From NCBI GenBank assembly GCA_002269645.1, contig NIVC01002637.1, positions 1 to 64,000 on the forward strand: a stretch of DNA of 64,000 nt, written 5' to 3'. The notes below the pieces were generated by a model. It saw only the letters and a program-made list of their open reading frames with translations. It was not told where the DNA came from and searched no databases. A program made the position numbers and the translations under genes. Source of the DNA: Macrostomum lignano. Lineage: Eukaryota. Each line of letters begins with the position of its first letter. Position 1 is the first letter of the stretch. This document shows positions 1 to 48,261 of the stretch, piece after piece.

Positions 1-3000
1 GATGGCCTGGGCCCGCATGTCCCGGTGGCACTGCAGGATGTCAAACACCTTCACAAGAGAAGAGGGGAGAGAATAACTGTTTCTTAGAAACGAAATAAAA
101 TATTATTAGAAATAAAAAACCGATTCTTAGAAATAAATGAAAGTTTCGTAGAAAAAAAACCGATTCTTAGAAATGAATAAAGGATTCTTAGAAATAAAAA
201 ACCGATTCTTAGAAATGAATAAAAGATCGTAGAAAAAACCGATTCTTAAAAAACCGATTCTTAGAAATGAATAAGATTCGTAGAAAAAAAAGAACCGATT
301 CTTAAAAAAACCGATTCTTAGAAATGAATAAAAGATTCGTAGAAAAAAAAGAACGATTATTAAGAAACCGATTCTTAGAAATGAATAAAGGACTCTTAGA
401 AATAAAAAACCGATTTTTAGAAATGAACAAAATATTATTAGAAGTAATAAATAACCGATTCTTAGAAATAAACGATAAATTTTTAGAGACACGTAAATAT
501 TTGATTATTTAGACACGAATTGTCATTTCGAAGAAAGAGATGATGATGCTAATTCTACATGGGCATTTCTGTAATTGAAATACTACTAGTATATAGCCTC
601 ACATCTACTGACTACTACCTTGATCCGATCCTCACATCTACAGACTCTAGTCACCTTGATCTATCCGCACATCTACAGATGTCACCTTGATCTGATCATC
701 ACATCTACAGATGTCCCTTGATCTGATCATCACATCTACAGATGGTCACCTTGATCTGATCCTCACATCTACAGATCTAGTCACCTTGATCTACATCACA
801 TCTACAGATGTCACCTTGATCTGATCCTCATATCTACAGAGGTCACCTCGATCTGATCCTCATATCTACAGATGGTCACCTTGATCTGATCCTCACATCT
901 ACAGATGGTCACCTTGATCTGATCCTCATATCTACAGAAGGTCACCTTGATCTGATCCTCATATCTACAGACTCTAGTCACCTTGATCTGATCCTCACAT
1001 CTAGACTCTAGTCACCTTGATCTGATCCTCACATCTAGACTCTAGTCACCTTGATCTGATCCTCACATCTACAGACTCTAGTCACCTTGATCTGATCCTC
1101 ACATCTACAGACTCTAGTCACCTTGATCTGATCCTTACATCTACAGACTCTAGTCACCTTGATCTGATCCTCATATCTACAGACTCTAGTCACCTCGATC
1201 TGATCCTCATATCTACAGATGGTCACCTCGATCTGATCCTCACATCTACAGATGGTCACCTTGATCTGATCCTCATATCTACAGATGGTCACCTTGATCT
1301 GATCCTCATATCTACAGATGGTCACTTTGATCTGATCCTCATATCTACAGATTCTAGTCACCTTGATCTGATCCTCATATCTACAGATTCTAGTCACCTT
1401 GATCTGATCCTCATATCTACAGAGGGTCACCTTGATCTGATTCTCACATCTAGATTTTCACCCAGATTCACCTTAATATGAGTTCCCGGATAGATTTTGT
1501 GCACAACATCGCCGGGCGGGCGGCCGGCCTCCCGGTCCAGATAGAAGGTGCCAACAAAGACGGAGTGGTCGGAGAGCACTTCCAGCCACACGTTGCCCTC
1601 GTCTCGCATAGTCAGCTTGACGCCTTTGCCGATGTGCAGCCTGGCTCGCTCGGAGACCTCGCTGCGGTGAACGTTGCTCAACTGGCCGAGGCAGAAGCGA
1701 TGACTGGACGAAGGGTCAGTGTAGCCGTCAATGATCACCTTGGATTGCTGGTAGGGCACCTTGAACATTTCGCCAACCTGCTCGGCTTGCTCATAGTAGG
1801 TGATGGTGCACCAGTGCACCGGGTGAGGCTGCCTGGTTAGCGGCTGCTGACAAGAGACGCTGCGTTCAACCCAGGGAGTGGCCACTGACAATGGCGGCAG
1901 CTGGTGATGCTGCAGCTGCTGATGATGAATGGGCGGAGGCGGCGGCATGGCTTGAGCTCCCCAGCTTCCGTGATGCTGTTGCTGCTGCTGCTGCTGCTGG
2001 TTGTGATGATGCAGATGATGCTGCGGCGGCGGCTGCTGTTGCTGCTGCTGATGCTGGCCAGGATGCAGCTGGTGCGGATGCAGCTGAGACTGAGGCTGGT
2101 GCTGAAGGTGCTGCTGCTGGTGCAGCATAGGGGAAGCATAATCAGGCTGAGAGGTGGCGTCGTCATCATCGCCAAGGCTGAGAGTGGAGAACTCCAAGCC
2201 GGGCTGACCACGCGCTCGTAATGATACGGATTGACGCAGACTGCGTCCTGCTTGAGCTCGAACGCGTACTGGCACTGGCGGGTGTGCTTGAGCTCGTTCT
2301 TGTGCAGGTCCGGCCAGCGCCAGATCTTCGCGTACACCACGTGGGAAAGCCTTTACGACCGGCCACCTGGAGTGTTTGGGGATCACAGGCTGATAATAGT
2401 GGGATCAGAGGGTGATAATAGTGGGATCAGAGGGTGATGATAGTGGGATCAGAGGGTGATAATAGTGGGATCAGAGGGTGATAATAGTGGGATCAGAGGG
2501 TGATGATAGTGGGATCAGAGAGTGGTAATGTGGGATCAGAGGGTGATAATAGTGGGATCAGAGGGTGATAATAGTGGGATCAGAGGGTGATAATAGTGGG
2601 ATCAGAGGGTGATGATAGTGGGATCAGAGGGTGATAATAGTGGGATCAGAGGGTGATGATAGTGGGATCAGAGAGTGGTAATGTGGGATCAGAGGTGATA
2701 ATAGTGGGATCAGAGAGTGGTAATGTGGGATCAGATGATAATAGTGGGATCAGAGAGTGGTAATAGTGGAATCACAGGGTGACAAACAGTGACATTACAG
2801 GATGACAAACGGTGGGATCACAGGGTGACAAACAGTGGGATCACAGGGTGACAAACAGTGGGATCACAGGGTGACAAACAGTGGGAGCACAGGGTGACAA
2901 ACGGTGGGATTACACGGTATCAATCCAAATCAAAGCGCCAGTCATTACCTGCAGCCGGCCGTCAAGAGTCCTGGGTATGGTGACGCACTTTGTAGGCTGA

Positions 3001-36083: not shown

Positions 36084-36992
36084 CGGGAGCTTGTAGCAGC
36101 CAGCAGCCAGCGGGTGTCCTTCCGAGCCGTGCCAACCGCGCTGCCAGCCGCTGTCCGCAACGCCACCGCCGGCGTCCGCCTGATGACGGGCGCGTCAGCC
36201 CCGGCCAGCTGCCAGGTCGAGTGCGCCGCCGACCCGGACTGTCGGGTGGCTCAACACGTCGCGCCGCACTGCTGGCTGGGCAACTCGACAGCCTGGTCTG
36301 CCGGCTGGGTCGCCCAGCCCGGTGCCGTCAGCCACCTCAAGCTGGCTGTGGACGACGGGGACACGCAGCTGCTGCTCGGCTTTGACCAACGATTTCTAAC
36401 AGGCCACTCGATCACCAATTCAACGGATGTGAAGTACGTCGGCGTAGATCAGATCGACGGCGTCGGGCTGAACTTTCTCGGCAAGTTCAGCTCTTACATT
36501 GACTTGCTCGGTCTGGGCACCTTTCTGGCCGCTCCGCCGCAGAATCTGACCTTCTTTGTCAAGGTGCAGCGAGCCTACCCGGACTCAGCTAGCAACAACC
36601 GGGCGTTCTTCAGCGTCTACAACTTGGCCAAGGGGCCGTCGGTCGATCGACCCGGTTTCTTCTACGAGAACTCCGGCATTGTGCACTTCTACTTCGTCTG
36701 GCCCTGCTCGTTCCGTTCTAAAGAGAGCGTGATGCCCATTGGCACTAGCGAGCAGTCGGTGTCGCTCGCTTTCGTGCTGAACGGCTGCAACGGAGCCAGG
36801 CTGTTCGTGTCCGGCGCTGAGCAGGAGGTCACTTCCAACGCGCGGGGAACCTCGGCTTACACGCCAGACGCCATTCGGCTGGGCTACGCTATTGCCGAGG
36901 GCAACACGTTCAACGGAGTGTTCCAGTGCTTCGCCATAGTAAAACGGGCGATGACCGCTGAGGAGATCCGCGCGATGGACGGCGTCTGCTGA
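36084..36992 (+). CDS. PAN/Apple-like + concanavalin A-like (LamG/pentraxin-type) domain protein; 5' end uncertain
   Basis: GC-rich open frame; CQVECAADPDC..HCWLG (PAN-like cysteine spacing); C-terminal ARLFVSG..IRLG..FNGVFQCFAIVKRAMTAEEIRAM typical of LamG-3 folds. No in-frame ATG before the PAN-like domain; candidate acceptor CTCAG at 36083. Confidence 0.65.
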   Translation, partial: RELVAASSQRVSFRAVPTALPAAVRNATAGVRLMTGASAPASCQVECAADPDCRVAQHVAPHCWLGNSTAWSAGWVAQPGAVSHLKLAVDDGDTQLLLGFDQRFLTGHSITNSTDVKYVGVDQIDGVGLNFLGKFSSYIDLLGLGTFLAAPPQNLTFFVKVQRAYPDSASNNRAFFSVYNLAKGPSVDRPGFFYENSGIVHFYFVWPCSFRSKESVMPIGTSEQSVSLAFVLNGCNGARLFVSGAEQEVTSNARGTSAYTPDAIRLGYAIAEGNTFNGVFQCFAIVKRAMTAEEIRAMDGVC

Positions 36993-39557
36993 TGATGAGG
37001 CTTTGGGCAATGAATGATTACAGTTTTACTGGCTGCTGAAATCAAAATATCCCCACTTAGCTGCCGCTAAAATTTTAGCCGTGGGGGACGAAAAGTTTTC
37101 GAGGCTCGGTTGATGTTTTTTATTTGTCGTGTTCCGGCTTGTCAAATTGCGTTAATGGAATTTCTGATCCTCGGAAGCTTCTCGTTTCTCGTTTCTGGTA
37201 GTTTTTACTAGTCTCGGATTCCTCTTCTTGGGAACTTTGTTAAACTACACAACCAATTTGGTAACTAAGAGCTTTGGAAAAATCTTAACAATGTGGTTTC
37301 AAGTTGCATCGAGTTTATGAGGCCAGTTCAATGAAGCGTGGACTACCGGAAGTTTATCAACGAACCAGTGGTTTTGAATAAACAATCAAAATTGGTAGTC
37401 GGCTGTCTATCAGTGGTTTCTGACCTCCGATTTGTTACCATTGCTTCGAAAAAAATCTTTGAAGTGTAAAAAAAGGTTGCTATTACAGGTGACCAGCAGC
37501 CATGTCCATTGCCCACTCAACTTACCCTTTAAAACGCATGCAGATACGTACGCAGACACAAACTCACACAGGATGTACAACCTGTGGGGTCGAATCATCC
37601 GACAAGCCCGAGACCTATTTTTGTGCATGCTGGTGGAACTGTTTTTTAGCTGCTGTACAACGGAGCAATGCAGGTACACGGAATTCAAGAATTAAATACA
37701 TCTGTTCCTGCACACCTTCTCAAACAAGAATCAAGTCACCAAACCTCCGGATATTCAACGATTCTTCCAGAGGGACGGATTTTCCCATAAGCCTTGCCAA
37801 GCCTCCAGATTTAACCAGCACGTCGACTACGTGTGTCTGCATCAGCCCTGACTTCGGTGGTCACTGGTCTTCTCCCGGGTGGAGCTCCGCCACCAGGTAA
37901 CTATGGACATCCTGTTTCTGTCTAGGTCTGATATCGCTGACCATGCCAGTGGACAGTGGGCAAACCTTGACTGCTGGACATCCTCAACTAGCCTCTCAAG
38001 CAACCTTACGGCTGACGGTATTCCTACTGTAAACCAACATACTTTGGCCATCCTGGGCAGTCGTTTCCTTTAGTATGGTTTAATCGTATTCTTGAACATC
38101 TAGCTCGCATTGGGAACACATTCCTGCCAGAAATATGCCTCACCCCCGTTGGGACTATCGCGTTTCAAGAACGTGCCTCTCAGCTTTTCAGATGTTTTCA
38201 TTTTTTGCACTATTTGCTCAGTTTTTACGTGCGCCTGCATGGACTTAAGGCGGCATGAATCCGGTGCGGTGGGTGCGTTGAATGCAATGGATTAAACCAG
38301 CTTGAGCAATATTTGCTCAGGATAGCTAGCTATTGACAATAGAAGCTGGAAGATTTCTCCTCAATAGTAACGGCTTGGCTAGCGGAGGCGTAATCTTTTC
38401 AAGGCTACGGTTAGTAGGTTGTTGGTGATTTTTGCTTGCCGCTTGTCACGCTTGCTGATGTCTGGACCATAGACAACTCAAGTAAAATGGGTGTAGGCTG
38501 AAAGATGCATTTGCAAGATTGAAGGTTCTCCGTTTATGGCAATAAAAGTCTTGCGGAGGAAACAGAGAAAGGAATAAAATTTTTTTAACAAACTACATGT
38601 AGGTTTTGACCTTGTGCAGTCTACGAGTTCAGTATCCTAAGGAAAATGATGTCTAAAGCAAAAAAAGTATCGCCCCCCTGCGAATTGTGGCACCAAAGCC
38701 CTATAACTCTCCCTTTGATGCCTGGCCTACCAACAACTCTGAGAACCCCCCCCCCCCTATGAGCCACAGCATTTTAGCAATCCCCTCATGAGTCTTGATA
38801 TCTCAGTAATTTCCCACATGAGCCACAGCATTTCGCTGGGTCCAGAATATCAAGCGCTAATAGACTGAAAAATCAATAATTAATTTGCTAAAAATATGGT
38901 TAAAGATTTAGCTGACAACTTTAATTTCAGTATAAGACAGATCCCCCATTTTTTCTGCATCCACAAAAAACTGAACGCGCTGGGCAAACTTTTAGTTGAG
39001 CCCCGTCTGGATTGGTGTTGAATATCAGAGTTTGCAGTTGCCAAGATAAATGCTTACATGTCGCACCAACCCGATGCCGGAAGCAAACACTCGCAAGTAC
39101 CGATGAGGCATGATGGCTGCCACATGTTGATTTCTTATTTGAGTTTCACCACCGGATGTGGATTTCGCTCAAATAATGATGCCTAGCCCAGGTACGGATA
39201 GGGAACACATGAATATAACATTGGGGAGTACAAAACTTATTGTTGGATATACTTTTTTCCAGGAATTAAAATGACTTCTCTAAATTCGAAAAAGCTCTAC
39301 GAAGTCCGCATGCTTGACATCAGTGTGATTTTATTTCACAGAAGCGAAGCTTTCCGGGAATTTTTCAAACCTTTTCCAATGCAGAAAGGCGAACTATATA
39401 TTTTTGGGATAGCAATCAAGCAAGCTTAGAGAAGGTAGTTTTCAACTGTAATATAAGCTCTAAACAGTTTTAAAAGATAGTTGCCATTCTGTGCGATTAA
39501 ATCGTTTTGACGATGAAAACTTCTGTGCCACCCATTTGTTATTAAAGACATGGAGCT

Positions 39558-39903
39558 GTGTGCACCCTGGCGCACTTTAACCGACATTGTCACACAACCG
39601 GCGAGAGGCATTGCTGCCCATTCCGCCGACTCCCCTGAGCAGGCACACAAGCGCGCGGATACGTACGCAGTCATACGCACAGGCACACACTCACACAGGA
39701 GTGCACAGCGGCCCTAACTTTATTTATCGCTAGGCATGTACACTTCACTGTGCCTTGGGGGCTGGCCCCTCAAGGGCGTTGATTGCACGAGCAGAGCCAA
39801 GCCGAGATTCCAATTTAGCCCCGAATTAATATCTGACTGCACTTGGAATCGAGCCTGGGCCGCTGTACGTGAGACCCCTGCGCTAGACCACATGGTTACG
39901 GCC
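39558..39903 (-). mobile_element. tRNA-derived SINE, family A copy 1
   Basis: tRNA-like head with B box GGCTCGATTCC; about 300 bp body nearly identical to the reverse complement of 47058-47360. Confidence 0.8.
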
Positions 39904-40699: not shown

Positions 40700-43600
40700 A
40701 TGGAGGAGACAGCGCAGAAGCTTGACCGTGCCGACTATGAAGTGCGCTTTCAGTCCTCCAGACGCGATCTGGTGGCGGCGCTGCGGTATCGCGAGTCCCG
40801 GTTTGTCCGCCTCGCTGAGTATCTTGGCGAGCTCAGGCGACTGATGTGTGACTTGAAAATCGAATGCGAAGCGACCGATGAAGACACGAAGCTGGACGAG
40901 CTGGACGAGCTGGACGAGATCTTGCAGAGCCAGCTCACTCTGTCCTTGATCGTGTTCGGCCGCAGCAACACGGGCAAGTCGACACTGCTAAACCAGCTGC
41001 TGCGGGATTGGCAGGAATCTCCGGCAAGCAGCCGAATAACCGGTCTGTTTCCCACCGCTGAGCACACCTGCACCGCCAGACTCACCTGCACTAGCCACGG
41101 ACCGAGCAGGACAGTGTCAATTCAGGACGTAATAACTAGTCAGGCGATCGTTGATACGACAGCCTTCGAGGATAGCAGGGAGTTACGAGAGTACATCGAC
41201 CTTAAAGGGAACGAGCGGGAGGATCGAAACACTGCGATGCTGGTGAAGGTGTCGTTGCCCAATGAACTACTTCGATACAACCTTCAGCTGGTGGACAGTC
41301 CCGGCATGGGCGAGAATGCTCAAATGAATGAGACCGTTCGAAATTTTTTGAACGGGGCCAAGTCGGCCATAGTCGTGTACACTGTTAATGGCACGGAAGG
41401 ATACAAGCCAGAGCCTGTAAGTTTGTGATGCCTAGAAGGTACATTTTCGAATGCCTGTGTAAGAAAGTTAATCTCAGTTATAAAATGTGAAGTAGGCGGC
41501 TCCTATACGAGCGAATTGCATTCTAAATTGATTAATTGACAGTTGAAAGTTGCAGACTTTAGATAGGTTCTTTCTAGCATTATCAACAAGTGTATCAACA
41601 TTTAAAAACTTGCAGGACACTGAGAACATCCGGTTCTTGATGGAGGAGCACAGCAGTATGCAAAAAGTGTTCGTTGCCAACCGGATTGATTGCTGCATAA
41701 AAAGTTACTACAAAAACTTGTGCGAGGAAGTTCAATGCGAGGACTCTAGCGACGAGGAGGAGGTAGTTAAAAGCCTGGAGAATGATATTGAAGGATTTCA
41801 GTACTCGGCGCACTGCCAAGAGCACATGCTGAAGCGCATGGGAAGCGTCATGGAGTCATTCAGCCAGTACCATCCAGGTTGCATCACCCCCGGCAGCGAA
41901 ACCGCTCTGCTCGGCGTGTCGGCCAAGTCAGTGGAGAATTTTTTATCGAACAATTGGCCCGTGCCGCACCCGCCATACCTGGACTCATTCCTGGAACTAG
42001 AGGCTCGAATTGCTGCGCTGGTTTACGCCAACGCTCGGCAGAAGCTTACAGATGCGATGGCCATTATGAAGCGTCTATTGATGCTGGCCTCCGTTCACCT
42101 GCTAGCCTTCAAGTTGTCCTCCGTTGTGACCTCCAGCCTTACCGAGATGCCAATGGAGCTGATGTCCCGGGCGCTCCGCGTAATTAAAGACACCTACGAA
42201 AGAATCAGCAAGGCTCTGCTGTTAGTGGCAGCGGAGGACTCGCTGCTGGACCTGAGCGACCCCGAGAGTGAGCTGAACGTCCTAAAGAACCAATTTGCTC
42301 GCGACGGTGCCAAAATGCAGGCCGCCGCTGACGTAAGCCTTGTGATGCGCCAAGCTGAGGCCAAGCTCATTGCTAGTCTGACTCAAGGCAAAAACAGAGA
42401 ATTTCAAGCAGCCGTCAGACTGCTATGCAGCTTCAAGGATATCTTAGTTAGCCACCTGAAAGCTGAGCTTCGATCCAAATATAAAGAGGTCCTTGCTAGG
42501 TCAGTATTGTCGCACACAGCTCACAGTGTCATGGAAGGCTTGTGCAGCTCCGCGGAAGAGTTTCATAATGATCTGGCAATAATAAAATGCACCTTTGAGC
42601 CAAATGATACCGAGTTCGGTGACCTTTGTGCAAGCCATCTAGTCGATGGCATGCGCCAGGCCCTGCCCAGACTTGTCCGCACAGCTGAGTTCGCCCAGCT
42701 AGTGGCCTCCAAATCTCCGGACAAGCGAACCCGACAGCTCGACTACTTCCTGGCCGGCATTGACCTTCGAAAGCTGACTGGCGAAGCCATCGAACTCTAC
42801 TGCGCCCAGCTGTGCCAGAAGAAGACGGACATCGAGGATCGGCTGACCGTTCAGCTCGACGAGTTGCGGCAGAGAAGTTTCGACAGTGTCGAAAAGAAAC
42901 TGCGCCTGAAGCCGCTGAAGCGGGATCTGACAGTTCTGCTCTTCAAGCTCACTGGGATGGATACGGAGCTGCGCTGGAATGCTTCCAATGTCACTCGCGA
43001 ATGTGAGTATGGCCAACCCTGGTGGGAGATCTTAGAAGTCTGAAATTTAGCTCAAATACACGTATATTTCTATTATATGTAGAACGGTTGCTGAGAAATG
43101 GAAACTCATCACTCAAAACTCGATCATAAAAATAAGGTCTAATAAATGCAAGTATGATAGCCTCGGTTTAGTGTGCTGTCAATAGCTCGTAATAATAATA
43201 ATTGATTACACCTGCCCCAATTGAGCCAGATGTGCAACCGACAGCTCAGCCGCATCATCTGAAGGCTGCGTACGGCTGTTCAGTGCATGGACTGGGGGGG
43301 GAGGGGGTCGCCACACACCCTCAATTACCCCAGCTAATGCTGGCACCCATTTTACAGCTGGGTGAACTGAAGCAATGCAGAGTTAAGTGTCTTGCTCAAG
43401 GACACAAATTGTTCCAGTCGACCTTCAAGTCGTGAGTCCGACTAGGCTATAACCCTTACGAATCTGTCAAGGATCTGGTCAAAGGTTTGGCGATGATTTC
43501 CATGTACATGTAGATTAGGATTTAGGGTCAGGTCTAGTAGACAATTTGTTGGAGTTAAATTACGGCAGTATGTTGACGTGAACTCATCTATGTTGTTAAG

Positions 43601-46420
43601 TCGCTTCAATCATTTTGAAATTTTTTATTCATAAATTCACTGCTATCTTACAGGCGAGCAGGTACGGCAGTGCCAGCAGGAAGTCTCCAATCTCCGCTGT
43701 CCCCAGCTTGGCAGTCGAAGACGCTGCATCCTGAGACCGCGGATCAGTGGAGGCCGAGCTGCGGACCTGCTCTGCCGCTGTCTCCACCTGCCCGCCGACT
43801 GTCTGAAGCGGATGGCGAGCAGCGCGATGCGGCTGAGGTGAGTAAGGCGGATGAAGGTTGCCTAGCACAGGTTGTGGGGCTCTATAGGGATAACTTGTCT
43901 GTGCCTTAAGTTATAATGCTATGCGTGTAAATAAGCTCAAGATCCTTCAATGCCTACTTCAGCAGTAGTTTATACCATTTTTACCTTATTCGTTACGCAT
44001 ACTTTTATACTACCTAAATACCGTAGTAGTCAAAGTAGCGCATTTCTAAAAACAACGTCAAACGTCAACGTCAAATAGACTGCAGAAAAGTATTTTTTTG
44101 GCCTGGCCCAAAAAACACCAACCAAATACGTTTGTTTATTCTTGGGCCGGGCCCACGTGGGGAATAAATACGTTTCTGTAGTCTATTGCCGGGCCCAAGT
44201 GGGGAATAAATACGTTTCTGTAGTCTATGGCTAGGCCAAAGTGGGGAATAAATACGTTTCTGTAGTCTATGGCTGGGCCAAAGTGGGGAATAAATACGTT
44301 TCTGTAGTCTATGGCCGGGCCCAAGTGGGGAATAAATACGTTTCTGTAGTCTATGGCCGGGCCCAAGTGGGGAATAAATACGTTTCTGTAGTCTATGGCT
44401 GGGCCCAAGTGGGGAATAAATACGTTTCTGTAGTCTATGGCTAGGCCAAAGTGGGGAATAAATACGTTTCTGTAGTCTATGGCTGGGCCAAAGTGGGGAA
44501 TAAATACGTTTCTGTAGTCTATGGCTGGGCCAAAGTGGGGAATAAATACGTTTTCTGTATTCTATTGCCAAGTGGGGAATAGGTTAGCAAAACGTTGGAT
44601 GCATAAGCCATTGACTCGATCTTCTCTCTGAAAGAATTCGTACGAATATGCGATATCATGCTGAAAAAGTTGCACCTCTTACAACTATATTGTCAGATCA
44701 AAGTTGCCCAGCTCAGTGCAGTTTGCCTGGTTCTTTCTTGACGAGCCCGACTGTGACAGCGGCACTACGGAAACAGCGGCTACAGACAAGGCTGACGACG
44801 TTCAACTGCTGCTAGGAGTGCTCACTAACGAAGCCAGTTGCAGGTTTCTATCAGAACTGCATCCGCATTCCATTACAGATGTTGATAGGCTTGTCTGGAT
44901 GCGCAGTCTGCTGATGTGCCAGGCGAACTTTGCCTCTGCCGAGTTGCACTATCGGCCAATGGACTACAGGCCCTCAAATGTGCTGGTGAGGCTCCAATCT
45001 CTTCCTAGCTGGGATTCTGATTGTTATCGTGAACTTGAGTGCTGTTTCTTAATCAATGAGCTTTAGTTCCTGTCTGGTTATTCAATGAGCTTCAGTTCCT
45101 GTCCGGTCATTCAATGAGCTTCAGTTCCTGTCCGGTCATCAATGAGCTTCACTTCCTGTCCGGTCATTCAATGAGCTTCTGTTCCCGTCCGCTCATTCAG
45201 TGAGCTCCAGTTCCTGTCCGGTCATTCAATGAGCTTCACTTCCTGTCCGGTCATTCAATGAGCTTCTGTTCCCGTCCGCTCATTCAGTGAGCTTCAGTTC
45301 CTGTCCGGTCATTCAATGAGCTTCACTTCCTTTCCAGTCATTTAATGAGCTCCAGTTCCCGTCCAGTCATTTAATGAGCTTCAGTTCCTATCCAGTCATT
45401 TAATGAGCTTCAGTTCCTATCCAGTCATTTAATGAGCTTCAGTTCCTATCCAGTCATTTAATGAGCTCCAGTTCCCGTCTAGTCATTTAATGAGCTTCAG
45501 TTCCTATCCAGTCATTTAATGAGCTCCAGTTCCCGTCCAGTCATTTAATGAGCTCCAGTTCCCGTCCAGTCATTTAATGAGCTTCAGTTCCTATCCAGTC
45601 ATTTAATGAGCTTCAGTTCCTATCCAGTCATTTAATGAGCTTCAGTTCCTATCCAGTCATTTAATGAGCTCCAGTTCCCGTCTAGTCATTTAATGAGCTT
45701 CAGTTCCTATCCAGTCATTTAATGAGCTTCAGTTCCTATCCAGTCATTTAATGAGCTTCAGTTCCTATCCAGTCATTTAATGAGCTTCAGTTCCTATCCA
45801 GTGATTTAATGAGCTTCAGTTCCTATCCAGTCATTTAATGAGCTTCAGTTCCTATCCAGTCATTTAATGAGCTCCAGTTCCCGTCCAGTCATTTAATGAG
45901 CTTCAGTTCCTGTCCAGTCATTAAAGAAAATCTAAAATGAAGCTTAAAAATCTTTCCATCAATGACCGGACAGGAACTGAAGCTTTTTGAACGAATGACT
46001 GTATTCTCAAATGTGCCTCAAACAAATGCTCAGATAGTTGATATGACGAGCGACCCAGCGGGAGGCGGCGACGGCGCCGGCAGCGGAGCCATGCCGGACC
46101 CGACCCACTTGCTGGCCGAGGCGGGCCAGGCGGCCGAGTCAGCCTCGCTGGCGGCCTGCATCGTGACTCTATTTGGTTACACTAGCAACACGGCTGAGCA
46201 CAGTCCAGCTGGCTGGAATGAGCACTATGAGGCCCAGCTGCAGCGAGCGGTGAGCAATCCGGAGACTTTCCTGACCTACCTGCCCAGCTGCTTGGGCGGA
46301 CGCCAGAATCGCAGCCTCATCAGCTGCGTGTCCGACTGCGTCTCAGCTTGTTTGGCCGGTTTGGATTCAGCGAAGGTCGAGGCGCTATCGAAGAGTGTGC
46401 AACGGCTGCTACCCGTTTGA
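40700..46420 (+). CDS. DSTYK-like protein: dynamin-like GTPase + helical region + degenerate kinase, ~990 aa; exons 40700-41416, 41616-43002, 43654-43837, 44697-44985, 46034(or 45974)-46420
   Basis: G1 GRSNTGKS, G2 TCTAR, G3 LVDSPG, G4 NRID. C-terminal kinase-like remnants DRLVWM..HYRPMDYRPSNVL, IVDM, DPTHLLAE. Junction phases 0,1,2,0 are all consistent with GT-AG sites and give no stops. Confidence 0.7.
43192..43445 (-). mobile_element. CORE-type tRNA SINE, family B copy 1 (head partly deleted), in DSTYK-like intron 2
   Basis: rc contains CCTTGAGCAAGACACTTAACTCTGCATTGCTTCAGTTCACCCAGCTGTAAAATGGG (CORE-like); matches 48262-48535; (AAT)n tail. Confidence 0.8.
44140..44580. repeat. 42-bp minisatellite in DSTYK-like intron 3
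   Basis: GGGCCCAAGTGGGGAATAAATACGTTTCTGTAGTCTATGGC(C/T), about 10 copies. Confidence 0.95.
45050..45922. repeat. 29-bp minisatellite (~30 copies) in DSTYK-like intron 4
   Basis: TT(C/T)AATGAGCTTCAGTTCCT(G/A)TCC(G/A)GTCA units. Confidence 0.95.
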
Positions 46421-47017: not shown

Positions 47018-47362
47018 GGCCGTAGCCCAGTGGTCTGCCGCGGCGCTCTGATGTGCCAGCGGCCCAGGCTCGATTCCAAGTGCAGTCACATTAATTTGGG
47101 GCTAAATTGGAATCGCGGCTTGGCTCTGCTCGTGCAATCAACGCCCTCGAGGGCCAACCCCAAGGCACAGTGAAGTGTACATGCCTAGCGATAAATAAAG
47201 TTAGGGCCGCTGTACACTCCTGTGTGAGTGTGTGCCTGTGCGTATGACTGCGTACGTATCCGCGCGCTTGTGTGCCTGCTCAGGGGAAGTCGGCGAAATG
47301 GGCAGCAATGCCTCTCGCCGGTTGTGTGACAATGTCGCTTAAAGTGCGCCAGGGCGCACACA
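47018..47362 (+). mobile_element. tRNA-derived SINE, family A copy 2
   Basis: A box TAGCCCAGTGG and B box GGCTCGATTCC; body is the inverse of 39558-39863. Confidence 0.8.
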
Positions 47363-48261
47363 GTCCCCTGCCTCCAACTAAAAGATCACAGCCTTCAGTG
47401 GAGCTATAAGGGGCACCTCTCTGCAAAGGCTCACTATCATTTGCATGGCTTGGCTCCGCCAATCCAGCTTAGGGAACCCGCAGCCTCAGCGAGACACAGG
47501 TGCAAATCTACCCATCACGGAAGGGTGGACTGTGTGCCTGTACGTGCTCAAGGGTCAGCGGAACGGGCATGGTGGGGCTGTCGCCAGAGCGAATGCAAGG
47601 TCGCTATGAAAGACTGGCTTTGCTAACAGTTATAGCATCTGCGCAGTTGAGCCAGGGGCTGTGCGCTCAATGTTTTATGACCCGCAAGCAATCACGAGAG
47701 AAACTGCGCCATCTCCTCTCCTACACGAGAGCAAACAGCTCAGAAGAGGCCAACTCTCTATTAATTCTATTGGCAGACTCAGTATAGAGTTCGGTGCTTG
47801 CCGTCAAGTGAGAGTTTTTTTGGTGAGCTTTTTCTTTTCAGTTAAGCTTTCTAGCGTCTTGCATTTCATTTCAATTAAAAGTTTTCAACACAAAGTTCTC
47901 AACTGCTAGCAGTCCGGCTCCACTTCATCAACGCTCATTGAGAATAATTCAGAAGCTGTGACCCTATAGGCATCTTCAGTCTCTCTCTTCATCGACGTTA
48001 ATTGTCTTTGAACAAGAGAGGCTGGCAGGGCCGTGAGACTGCAAGGGCTAGGATGGAGCTGCTGGGGAATGGGCAGTGTTTGCCAACGCAGCGGGGGGGG
48101 GCTTAGCTGGGGTTGGACTGTTTACTACAGAACCGTCTCTATCCCAGTTTTCAGGCCTGCGACTACCAAGGAGGCCGGGAGTGTTAGTCTGGAATACAGA
48201 ATTTACTGAAGTATCGCAGCTTTCTATTTGGTCTCACATTAAGACTGGTGATTGATAAAAA

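Follow-up and report, generated by a model that had tools for sequence, protein, structure and literature searches.

Vertebrate DSTYK (RIPK5, 'Dusty') is an active kinase that in mammals is membrane-associated at late endosomes (PMC11933320). In zebrafish dstyk mutants, notochord vacuoles are reported to be fragmented and mTORC1/TFEB signalling to be disturbed (PMC7012607, PMC6981171). A review of RIP kinases handles DSTYK solely via its kinase domain (PMC9573974), and no publication that links DSTYK to dynamin or treats its N-terminal region as dynamin-like was found in the library that could be searched. The present analysis concerns a gene on contig NIVC01002637.1 of Macrostomum lignano, of which positions 1-64,000 of the forward strand were analysed (this stretch of 64,000 nucleotides is termed the window, and all coordinates are those of the window). 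The gene is located on the + strand at positions 40700-46420, and its product had originally been predicted, from the letters of the sequence, to be a DSTYK-like protein with an intact dynamin-type GTPase and an apparently dead kinase.

We consider it likely that the locus is an intact, spliced gene for a divergent DSTYK member of 987 residues, in which a dynamin-superfamily GTPase and a helical stalk are followed by a C-terminus descended from a kinase, the protein being GTP-driven and its C-terminus a pseudokinase module. Sequence comparison identifies it as a far-diverged DSTYK family protein with intact dynamin-type GTPase motifs and a kinase domain decayed past recognition by standard profiles.

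Vertebrate DSTYK, with 929 residues in human, belongs to this family too and is organised alike overall. Closer comparison is offered by the invertebrate DSTYK-like proteins of Lingula anatina (XP_013414082.1), Nematostella vectensis (XP_032222785.1), Ptychodera flava (XP_070553789.1), Tubulanus polymorphus (XP_074648888.1) and Branchiostoma belcheri (XP_019629705.1). In common with these, the Macrostomum protein has a Dynamin_N GTPase, a helical stalk of ~350 residues and a kinase-type domain at the C-terminus as well as the signatures GxxNxGKS, PCT[AS]R, D[ST]PGxxEN and Y-V-I-D-G (YVIDG...D), and with many invertebrate DSTYK-like proteins it shares the loss of the alphaC Glu, HRD and DFG while the G motifs are kept. 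It differs from them by an identity of only 14-19%, with HMMER seeing the GTPase region alone, by a C-terminus that is invisible to Pkinase profiles, by NRID as the G4 motif, by an extra intron at the boundary of stalk and kinase domain, and by inserted residues at two places, one between alphaC and beta4, the other within HRD. The BDLP/mitofusin/IniA class likewise has a G domain followed by long helical bundles; the Macrostomum protein differs from this class in being without a conserved transmembrane or paddle segment and in the fusion of a kinase-derived domain to its C-terminus. ROCO proteins such as LRRK2 also combine a GTPase and a kinase-type domain on one polypeptide and are a useful comparison with regard to coupling, but their GTPase is unrelated (Roc-COR, Ras-like), domain order and partners are different, and no homology is claimed.

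GTPase domain, stalk and relationship to the DSTYK family

Pfam assigns residues 84-229 to Dynamin_N (E 3e-11, 44.1 bits, gathering threshold 27). The motifs G1-G4 (Table 1) are present where they had originally been recognized and fall on columns that are invariant in the family; the P-loop residues G, G, K and S are the same in 20/20 aligned members. The paralog BOX15_Mlig020050g2, 36-47% identical, keeps G1-G4 as well, including an identical NRID. As the G domains of the two proteins are only 47% identical, this retention argues for selection on nucleotide binding.

The top sequence match in the PDB is the bacterial dynamin-like protein BDLP (E 3e-5). Modeling of the full-length protein with AlphaFold, for which a 20-sequence family alignment served as input, yielded a predicted local distance difference test score (pLDDT) of 80-89 over the G domain and an all-helical region at residues 302-693 with a pLDDT of about 60-80. 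When the model of GTPase and stalk was compared with the PDB by Foldseek, the top 50 matches were all members of the dynamin superfamily. BDLP came first (E 4e-15, 748 columns), followed by IniA (1.6e-11), the Campylobacter dynamin-like protein pair, SynDLP, mitofusin 1/2 (~1e-9), Drp1, OPA1 and Mx. A membrane paddle or transmembrane helix at residues 386-411 was considered and rejected, because the equivalent stretch of the paralog is not hydrophobic; these residues being the sole hydrophobic stretch, comparison with the paralog revealed no conserved membrane-insertion segment.

Close relatives are few. Among 5.8 billion proteins they comprise only a near-identical copy, A0A1I8HDE4, and the paralog (~36-38% identity). 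When 1.84 billion representatives were searched exhaustively by HMMER with a query profile built from the two Macrostomum paralogs, just two proteins, both from Macrostomum, fell below 1e-30, followed by proteins of ~875-960 residues (E 8e-19 to 1e-10) that matched in the GTPase region only. Names were checked for ten of the best matches from outside Macrostomum, and all ten (~890-955 residues; from Lingula, Ptychodera, Saccoglossus, Glandiceps, Nematostella, Tubulanus and Branchiostoma) are annotated as DSTYK or DSTYK-like. Additional matches mostly bear the same annotation; the others are a bacterial dynamin, three Tubulanus proteins labelled as uncharacterised and a single protein that carries no name. 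According to Pfam, each of the ten named relatives has an N-terminal Dynamin_N domain and seven have a C-terminal Pkinase domain. The Pkinase match is strong for Tubulanus (1e-41) and for Branchiostoma (5e-33), five proteins give a weaker or partial one, and three give none.

The relationship extends beyond the GTPase. Alignment by hhalign of the profile of the Macrostomum pair with that of 18 DSTYK-like proteins, with reversed and column-shuffled controls for the individual regions, gave a probability of 99.9 (E 5e-33) over 825 collinear columns from end to end. The GTPase region alone reached E 1.5e-33 and the C-terminal 287 residues P 8e-3, and the stalk alone received modest support (score 36.3, P 1.1e-3, 292 collinear columns; shuffles at most 18); all three regions scored above their reversed and shuffled controls. 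The DSTYK-like character originally proposed on the grounds of architecture and length is thus borne out by the names of the best matches, by the collinear alignment and by three introns common with Lingula DSTYK. Some other approaches did not recover it: hidden Markov models (HMMs) of the stalk and kinase regions of DSTYK-like proteins, run against the Macrostomum proteins with hmmsearch, gave insignificant or misplaced matches with one exception, where the stalk of the paralog begins, and a homologue search with the family alignment returned generic bacterial and plant kinases and no DSTYK-like proteins, the same search with Branchiostoma DSTYK yielding that protein itself and one Lingula protein. 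A rough neighbour-joining tree of GTPase and stalk is star-like and leaves the gene outside a clade of members with intact kinase motifs; given its shape, the tree does not fix the place of the gene within the family.

As a separate observation, the DSTYK-type kinase HMM recognises a set of proteins of 1000-1800 residues among the GTPase matches as well (E 1e-30 to 1e-8), and two Tubulanus members of this set are annotated just as 'uncharacterized'. Fusions of dynamin-like GTPases and kinases may accordingly come in more forms than those of the DSTYK family proper.

Descent and decay of the C-terminal domain

For a comparison of intron positions, exons were mapped in the DSTYK genes of Lingula (P0261) and Branchiostoma (P0014), both of which encode both domains. 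The first of the three Lingula introns (phase 0) directly precedes the conserved Asp downstream of YVVDG..., the second (phase 2) interrupts the Arg codon (R678) of EIHYT-R-S after alphaC, and the third (phase 0) comes after KPENVL, where the catalytic loop ends. All three are matched in column and phase by introns 1, 3 and 4 of Macrostomum (YKPEP|D, AMRL-R-SK and RPSNVL|I, respectively), of which introns 3 and 4 are located inside the kinase domain. In Branchiostoma the first and the third of these introns are found at exactly the same places (the third after KPQNIL|), while the second is off by one to two codons and in phase 0. By our own estimate, which considers three introns, ~900 codons and three phases, the chance of an exact coincidence is ~0.1% per intron, so that three coincidences are not plausibly random. 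Intron 2, in phase 1 at codon 702 on the boundary of stalk and kinase domain, is the only one peculiar to Macrostomum, and the paralog has an intron at the equivalent place and in the same phase.

Profile comparison points in the same direction. In the alignment with the DSTYK kinase domains computed by hhalign, ITDVDRLVWMRSLLMCQANFASAELHYRPMDYRPSNVLIVDM falls on helix alphaE and the catalytic loop (...RL.IA.DVA.GL..LH..G.I..DLKP.NILI). The score of this match (DRLVW...HYRPMDYRPSNVL) was 25.3 (P 0.0077) and was reached by 0/200 column shuffles (mean 13.0, max 22.3). Global-mode hhalign of the C-terminus produced a terminal match only and was discarded as meaningless. When the cropped domains were aligned with MAFFT, landmarks appeared in the order typical of kinases. 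LGSRRRC takes the place of the Gly-rich loop and LLCRCL that of VAIK, and exon 5 has THLLAE (residues 883-888) at APE, SLAACIVTLF at the DxxxxG helix alphaF and LISCVSDCVS at the CW...R helix. The domain furthermore occupies the place of the kinase domain in the nearest relatives and has approximately its length; its identity to kinase domains is only 10-16%. The intron positions as the strongest line, together with hhalign and the order of landmarks, show at the level of sequence that the C-terminal domain descends from the DSTYK kinase domain.

The kinase fold is less certain than kinase descent. AlphaFold modeling of the cropped domain with 18 aligned DSTYK-like kinase domains (pLDDT 58.6, predicted template modeling score 0.58) arranged its elements in kinase order, namely three strands, alphaC, two strands, alphaE and four or five C-lobe helices, and the top 50 Foldseek matches listed for this model were all protein kinases, headed by IRAK4 (E 2.7e-4, template modeling score 0.43-0.49). 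AlphaFold thus yielded a kinase-like model only with kinase domains as the input alignment, which biases the outcome, and the full-length run produced no usable model of the C-terminus.

With regard to catalytic residues, the verdict of a dead kinase holds at the level of motifs. As had been pointed out before, exon 3 is devoid of GxGxxG and VAIK: at the aligned places we find LGSRRRC, where at most one Gly is kept (aligned S.G..R), and LLCRCL, where the beta3 Lys is replaced by Arg. At the alphaC site, also in exon 3, the sequence reads DCLKRMASSAMRL and Glu is replaced by Ser. Both the catalytic-loop remnant HYRPMDYRPSNVL (residues 847-859, 44947-44985) and HLLAE as the APE region, originally recognized by eye, agree with the alignments. 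Within the remnant, HRD is interrupted by an insertion, resulting in H-Y-R-P-M-D as compared with H-R-P-S-D in the paralog. At the HRDxKxxN site the equivalents of Asp (D852) and Asn (N857) are retained and Lys is exchanged for Arg; in the paralog the Asn is replaced by Cys. Alignment of the kinase region revealed no DFG in the C-terminal domain. The proposal that DFG survives as DMT is probably wrong, since D862 follows N857 at a distance of only 5 residues (~13-15 in kinases) and the aligned place is occupied by GGGDGAG (D872), which is not conserved in the paralog; we regard the motif as lost.

Degeneration of the kinase is not peculiar to this gene. In a motif survey of 16 family members outside Macrostomum, G1-G3 were kept in all 16, whereas kinase motifs were kept in seven (with Arg at beta3 in one), which form one clade in the rough neighbour-joining tree. 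The other nine have neither the alphaC Glu nor DFG, most also lack HRD, and four of them have Arg for the beta3 Lys. Loss of kinase motifs thus does not bar membership in the DSTYK family. Judging by these motifs, an intact GTPase with a degenerate kinase is a common state among invertebrate DSTYK-like paralogs, of which Macrostomum presents the extreme case. The original description of the protein as a GTPase-pseudokinase, an apparent mirror image of vertebrate DSTYK, agrees with its motif pattern and with the provisional human sequence considered below, but the state is no distinction of this gene, which is a divergent homolog in a known family, interesting but not unprecedented, and no new kind of system.

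The Macrostomum paralog (NIVC01004419.1, 12580-14225) contains C-terminal exons homologous to exons 3-5 of the window. Identity between the two proteins amounts to 47% in the G domain, 36% in the stalk and 34% in the C-terminal domain (conceptual C-terminus of the paralog), where the catalytic-loop remnant RP.DYRPS.VL (paralog sequence LAHRPSDYRPSCVL) is the best-conserved stretch. Conservation of the C-terminus at about the level of the stalk, with a maximum in the loop remnant, points to a constrained, non-catalytic role. The exon-4 and exon-5 equivalents of the paralog are contiguous, intron 4 being absent.

Gene model, alternative readings and surroundings

The gene consists of five exons with GT-AG junctions and consistent phases (Table 1), just as originally modeled. 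All acceptors are AG, and introns 1 to 4 have lengths of 199, 651, 859 and 1048 nucleotides. The spliced product of 987 residues deviates from UniProt A0A1I8G8J1 (Macrostomum lignano, 'Dynamin_N domain-containing protein') by a single difference, L442S, and exons 3-5 are present in two independent database models. Splicing to another in-frame acceptor, at 41556, would insert 20 residues (TLDRFFLALSTSVSTFKNLQ) into the GTPase domain; 41616 is the acceptor chosen in the database model as well as in the paralog.

Several results weigh against an intact GTPase joined to a kinase-derived module. In the GTPase, G4 reads NRID rather than NKxD, and binding and hydrolysis of GTP are predicted properties. 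Searches with the C-terminus returned neither a Pfam match for the last 287 or 318 residues, even at E<=10, nor a PDB match at E<=10 for its two-sequence profile, and the DSTYK-like kinase HMM did not match at the right place. Residues 696-987 remain below pLDDT 50 in the full-length AlphaFold model, and the kinase-like result for the cropped domain demonstrates compatibility, not independent proof, as its input alignment consisted of kinases. The exon 2-3 junction is predicted from sequence alone, with read-through past the exon 2 donor to a stop at 43043 as the alternative, and the C-terminal exons of the paralog need two single-base frame changes, which could mean an indel error of the assembly or a decaying copy with a dispensable domain.

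It is on the predicted splicing of exons 3-5, the low confidence of the full-length model over the C-terminus, and the frame changes of the paralog, whose NCBI model ends prematurely in the wrong frame, that one could base the view that the functional product stops at 43043 and consists of GTPase and stalk (~715 residues), exons 3-5 being a decaying kinase remnant joined by predictors. We regard this as improbable, since these exons are open, match in phase and have canonical splice sites, since they resemble the paralog about as much as the stalk does, with the catalytic-loop remnant as the most conserved part, and since the exon 2-3 intron is spliced even in the annotated model of the paralog and exons 3-5 are kept in both database models. 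Just as improbable in our estimation is an atypical active kinase or other nucleotide-using enzyme at the C-terminus. Some proteins classed as pseudokinases are active, the equivalents of D852 and N857 are kept with Arg in the place of Lys, and nowhere in the domain are the paralogs more alike than in the loop bearing them; such an enzyme would, however, have to operate without Gly-rich loop, beta3 Lys, alphaC Glu and DFG and with extra residues in HRD, the paralog has Cys for the Asn, and no kinase profile matches. That the C-terminal 290 residues are an unrelated helical domain resembling kinases by chance is the least probable reading and very unlikely, as the empty sequence profiles, the low identity to kinases and the dependence of the kinase-like AlphaFold model on the supplied alignment are outweighed by two internal introns matching those of the Lingula kinase domain in column and phase, by the collinear hhalign match over alphaE and catalytic loop (P 0.008, 0/200 shuffles), by APE, alphaF and CW-helix equivalents in order, and by the same place and similar length as in the nearest relatives.

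Table 1. Features of the DSTYK-like gene and of the remaining window; residue numbers refer to the spliced product.
Feature	Position	Strand	Remarks
Exon 1	40700-41416	+	residues 1-239; N-terminal helix and GTPase domain through G3; donor GTAAGT, phase 0
Exon 2	41616-43002	+	residues 240-701; rest of GTPase domain including G4, then long helical stalk; donor GTGAGT, phase 1
Exon 3	43654-43837	+	residues 702-763; kinase N-lobe remnant; donor GTGAGT; 3' intron phase 2
Exon 4	44697-44985	+	residues 763-859; beta4-beta5 with insertion, helix alphaE DRLVWMRSLLMCQANFAS, catalytic-loop remnant HYRPMDYRPSNVL; donor GTGAGG, phase 0
Exon 5	46034-46420 (stop included)	+	residues 860-987; remnants of activation segment and C-lobe helices
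G1 / P-loop GRSNTGKS	40958-40981	+	residues 87-94
Switch I / G2 region HTCTARL	41063-41083	+	residues 122-128; T125 fits family signature PCT[AS]R
G3 DSPG	41294-41305	+	residues 199-202; inside family signature D[ST]PGxxEN
G4 NRID	41679-41690	+	residues 261-264; conservative Lys-to-Arg variant of family [NST]KxD
Minisatellite	44124-44565		42-bp unit x 10.5 copies; intron 3
Minisatellite	45055-45922		29-bp unit x 30 copies; intron 4
Inverted pair of 350-nt element	39556-39903 and 47018-47363		brackets the whole DSTYK-like gene; copies ~7.1 kb apart
Long open reading frame	1427-2386	-	SMAD MH2 domain (Pfam 2.9e-38)
Open reading frame, 588 residues	12652-14418	-	matches C-terminus of PCM1 (Pfam PCM1_C, 2.8e-34)
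Three overlapping open reading frames, >730 residues	15489-17814	+	all three + frames open
Open reading frame	36114-36992	+	Laminin_G_3 / concanavalin-like domain (1.7e-8)
Open reading frame, 874 residues, adjoining one of 560 residues	57946-62489	-	Transposase_21 (tnp2) domain (1e-8) in the former; no Pfam match for the latter

The two copies of the element flanking the gene are 92% identical (up to 99% over 130 nucleotides), and no further copy occurs within the window. Insertion of an interspersed repeat on two occasions is one possible origin; the other is a larger mobile unit with the gene inside it and the two copies as its ends. Elsewhere in the window, the reading frame with the MH2 domain is probably an exon of a SMAD gene. 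A strong GC skew of -0.58 at 16-18 kb around the three overlapping frames suggests a long low-complexity or repeat tract, and the AT-rich region (GC 0.31-0.42) containing the transposase domain is probably a DNA transposon.

Probable mode of action and significance for the DSTYK family

On the preferred reading, that of an intact GTPase fused to a kinase-derived pseudokinase, the protein would most likely be a large GTPase resembling BDLP and mitofusins and driven by GTP, whose G domains dimerise in a nucleotide-dependent manner and whose stalk rearranges, and the pseudokinase would have no catalytic part but act in binding or regulation. If vertebrate DSTYK is taken as a guide, endolysosomal membranes are probably the site of action: the late-endosome localisation (PMC11933320) and the reported zebrafish vacuole phenotype (PMC7012607, PMC6981171) make an endolysosomal role the best guess and would fit a membrane-remodelling ancestry. 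For an immune GTPase, also envisaged in the original prediction, nothing in the analysis speaks.

As to the history of the family, we lean slightly towards an ancestral fusion of a working GTPase and a working kinase, which still exists in Lingula, Tubulanus and Branchiostoma, and of which individual lineages lost the activity of one half, the vertebrates that of the GTPase and Macrostomum along with many invertebrate paralogs that of the kinase. For human DSTYK we drew on a provisional sequence of 929 residues, which is no database record and serves as a lead only. Its G motifs, GQDCNVKC, CKLR and VVAPCQG in this version, would be degenerate, and it can be aligned over its whole length with the DSTYK proteins of Lingula and Tubulanus (E ~1e-72). 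If reciprocal loss is true, each half of DSTYK can work alone with the other half as a scaffold, and a pseudo-GTPase followed by a stalk of dynamin type would make up the N-terminal two thirds of the human protein, which would explain its membrane localisation. No function has been assigned to this large N-terminal region in the literature searched, and the matter bears on a disease gene implicated in kidney and urinary tract malformation and in spastic paraplegia type 23.

Within a little-studied GTPase-kinase family, the Macrostomum gene has the most decayed kinase among the members sampled. The continued constraint on GTPase and stalk after loss of the kinase signatures suggests that the GTPase is a functional core of the family outside vertebrates. 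Macrostomum lignano is amenable to RNA interference and transgenesis, so that a GTPase-only function could be probed there, and reciprocal domain decay across DSTYK may merit a study of its own.

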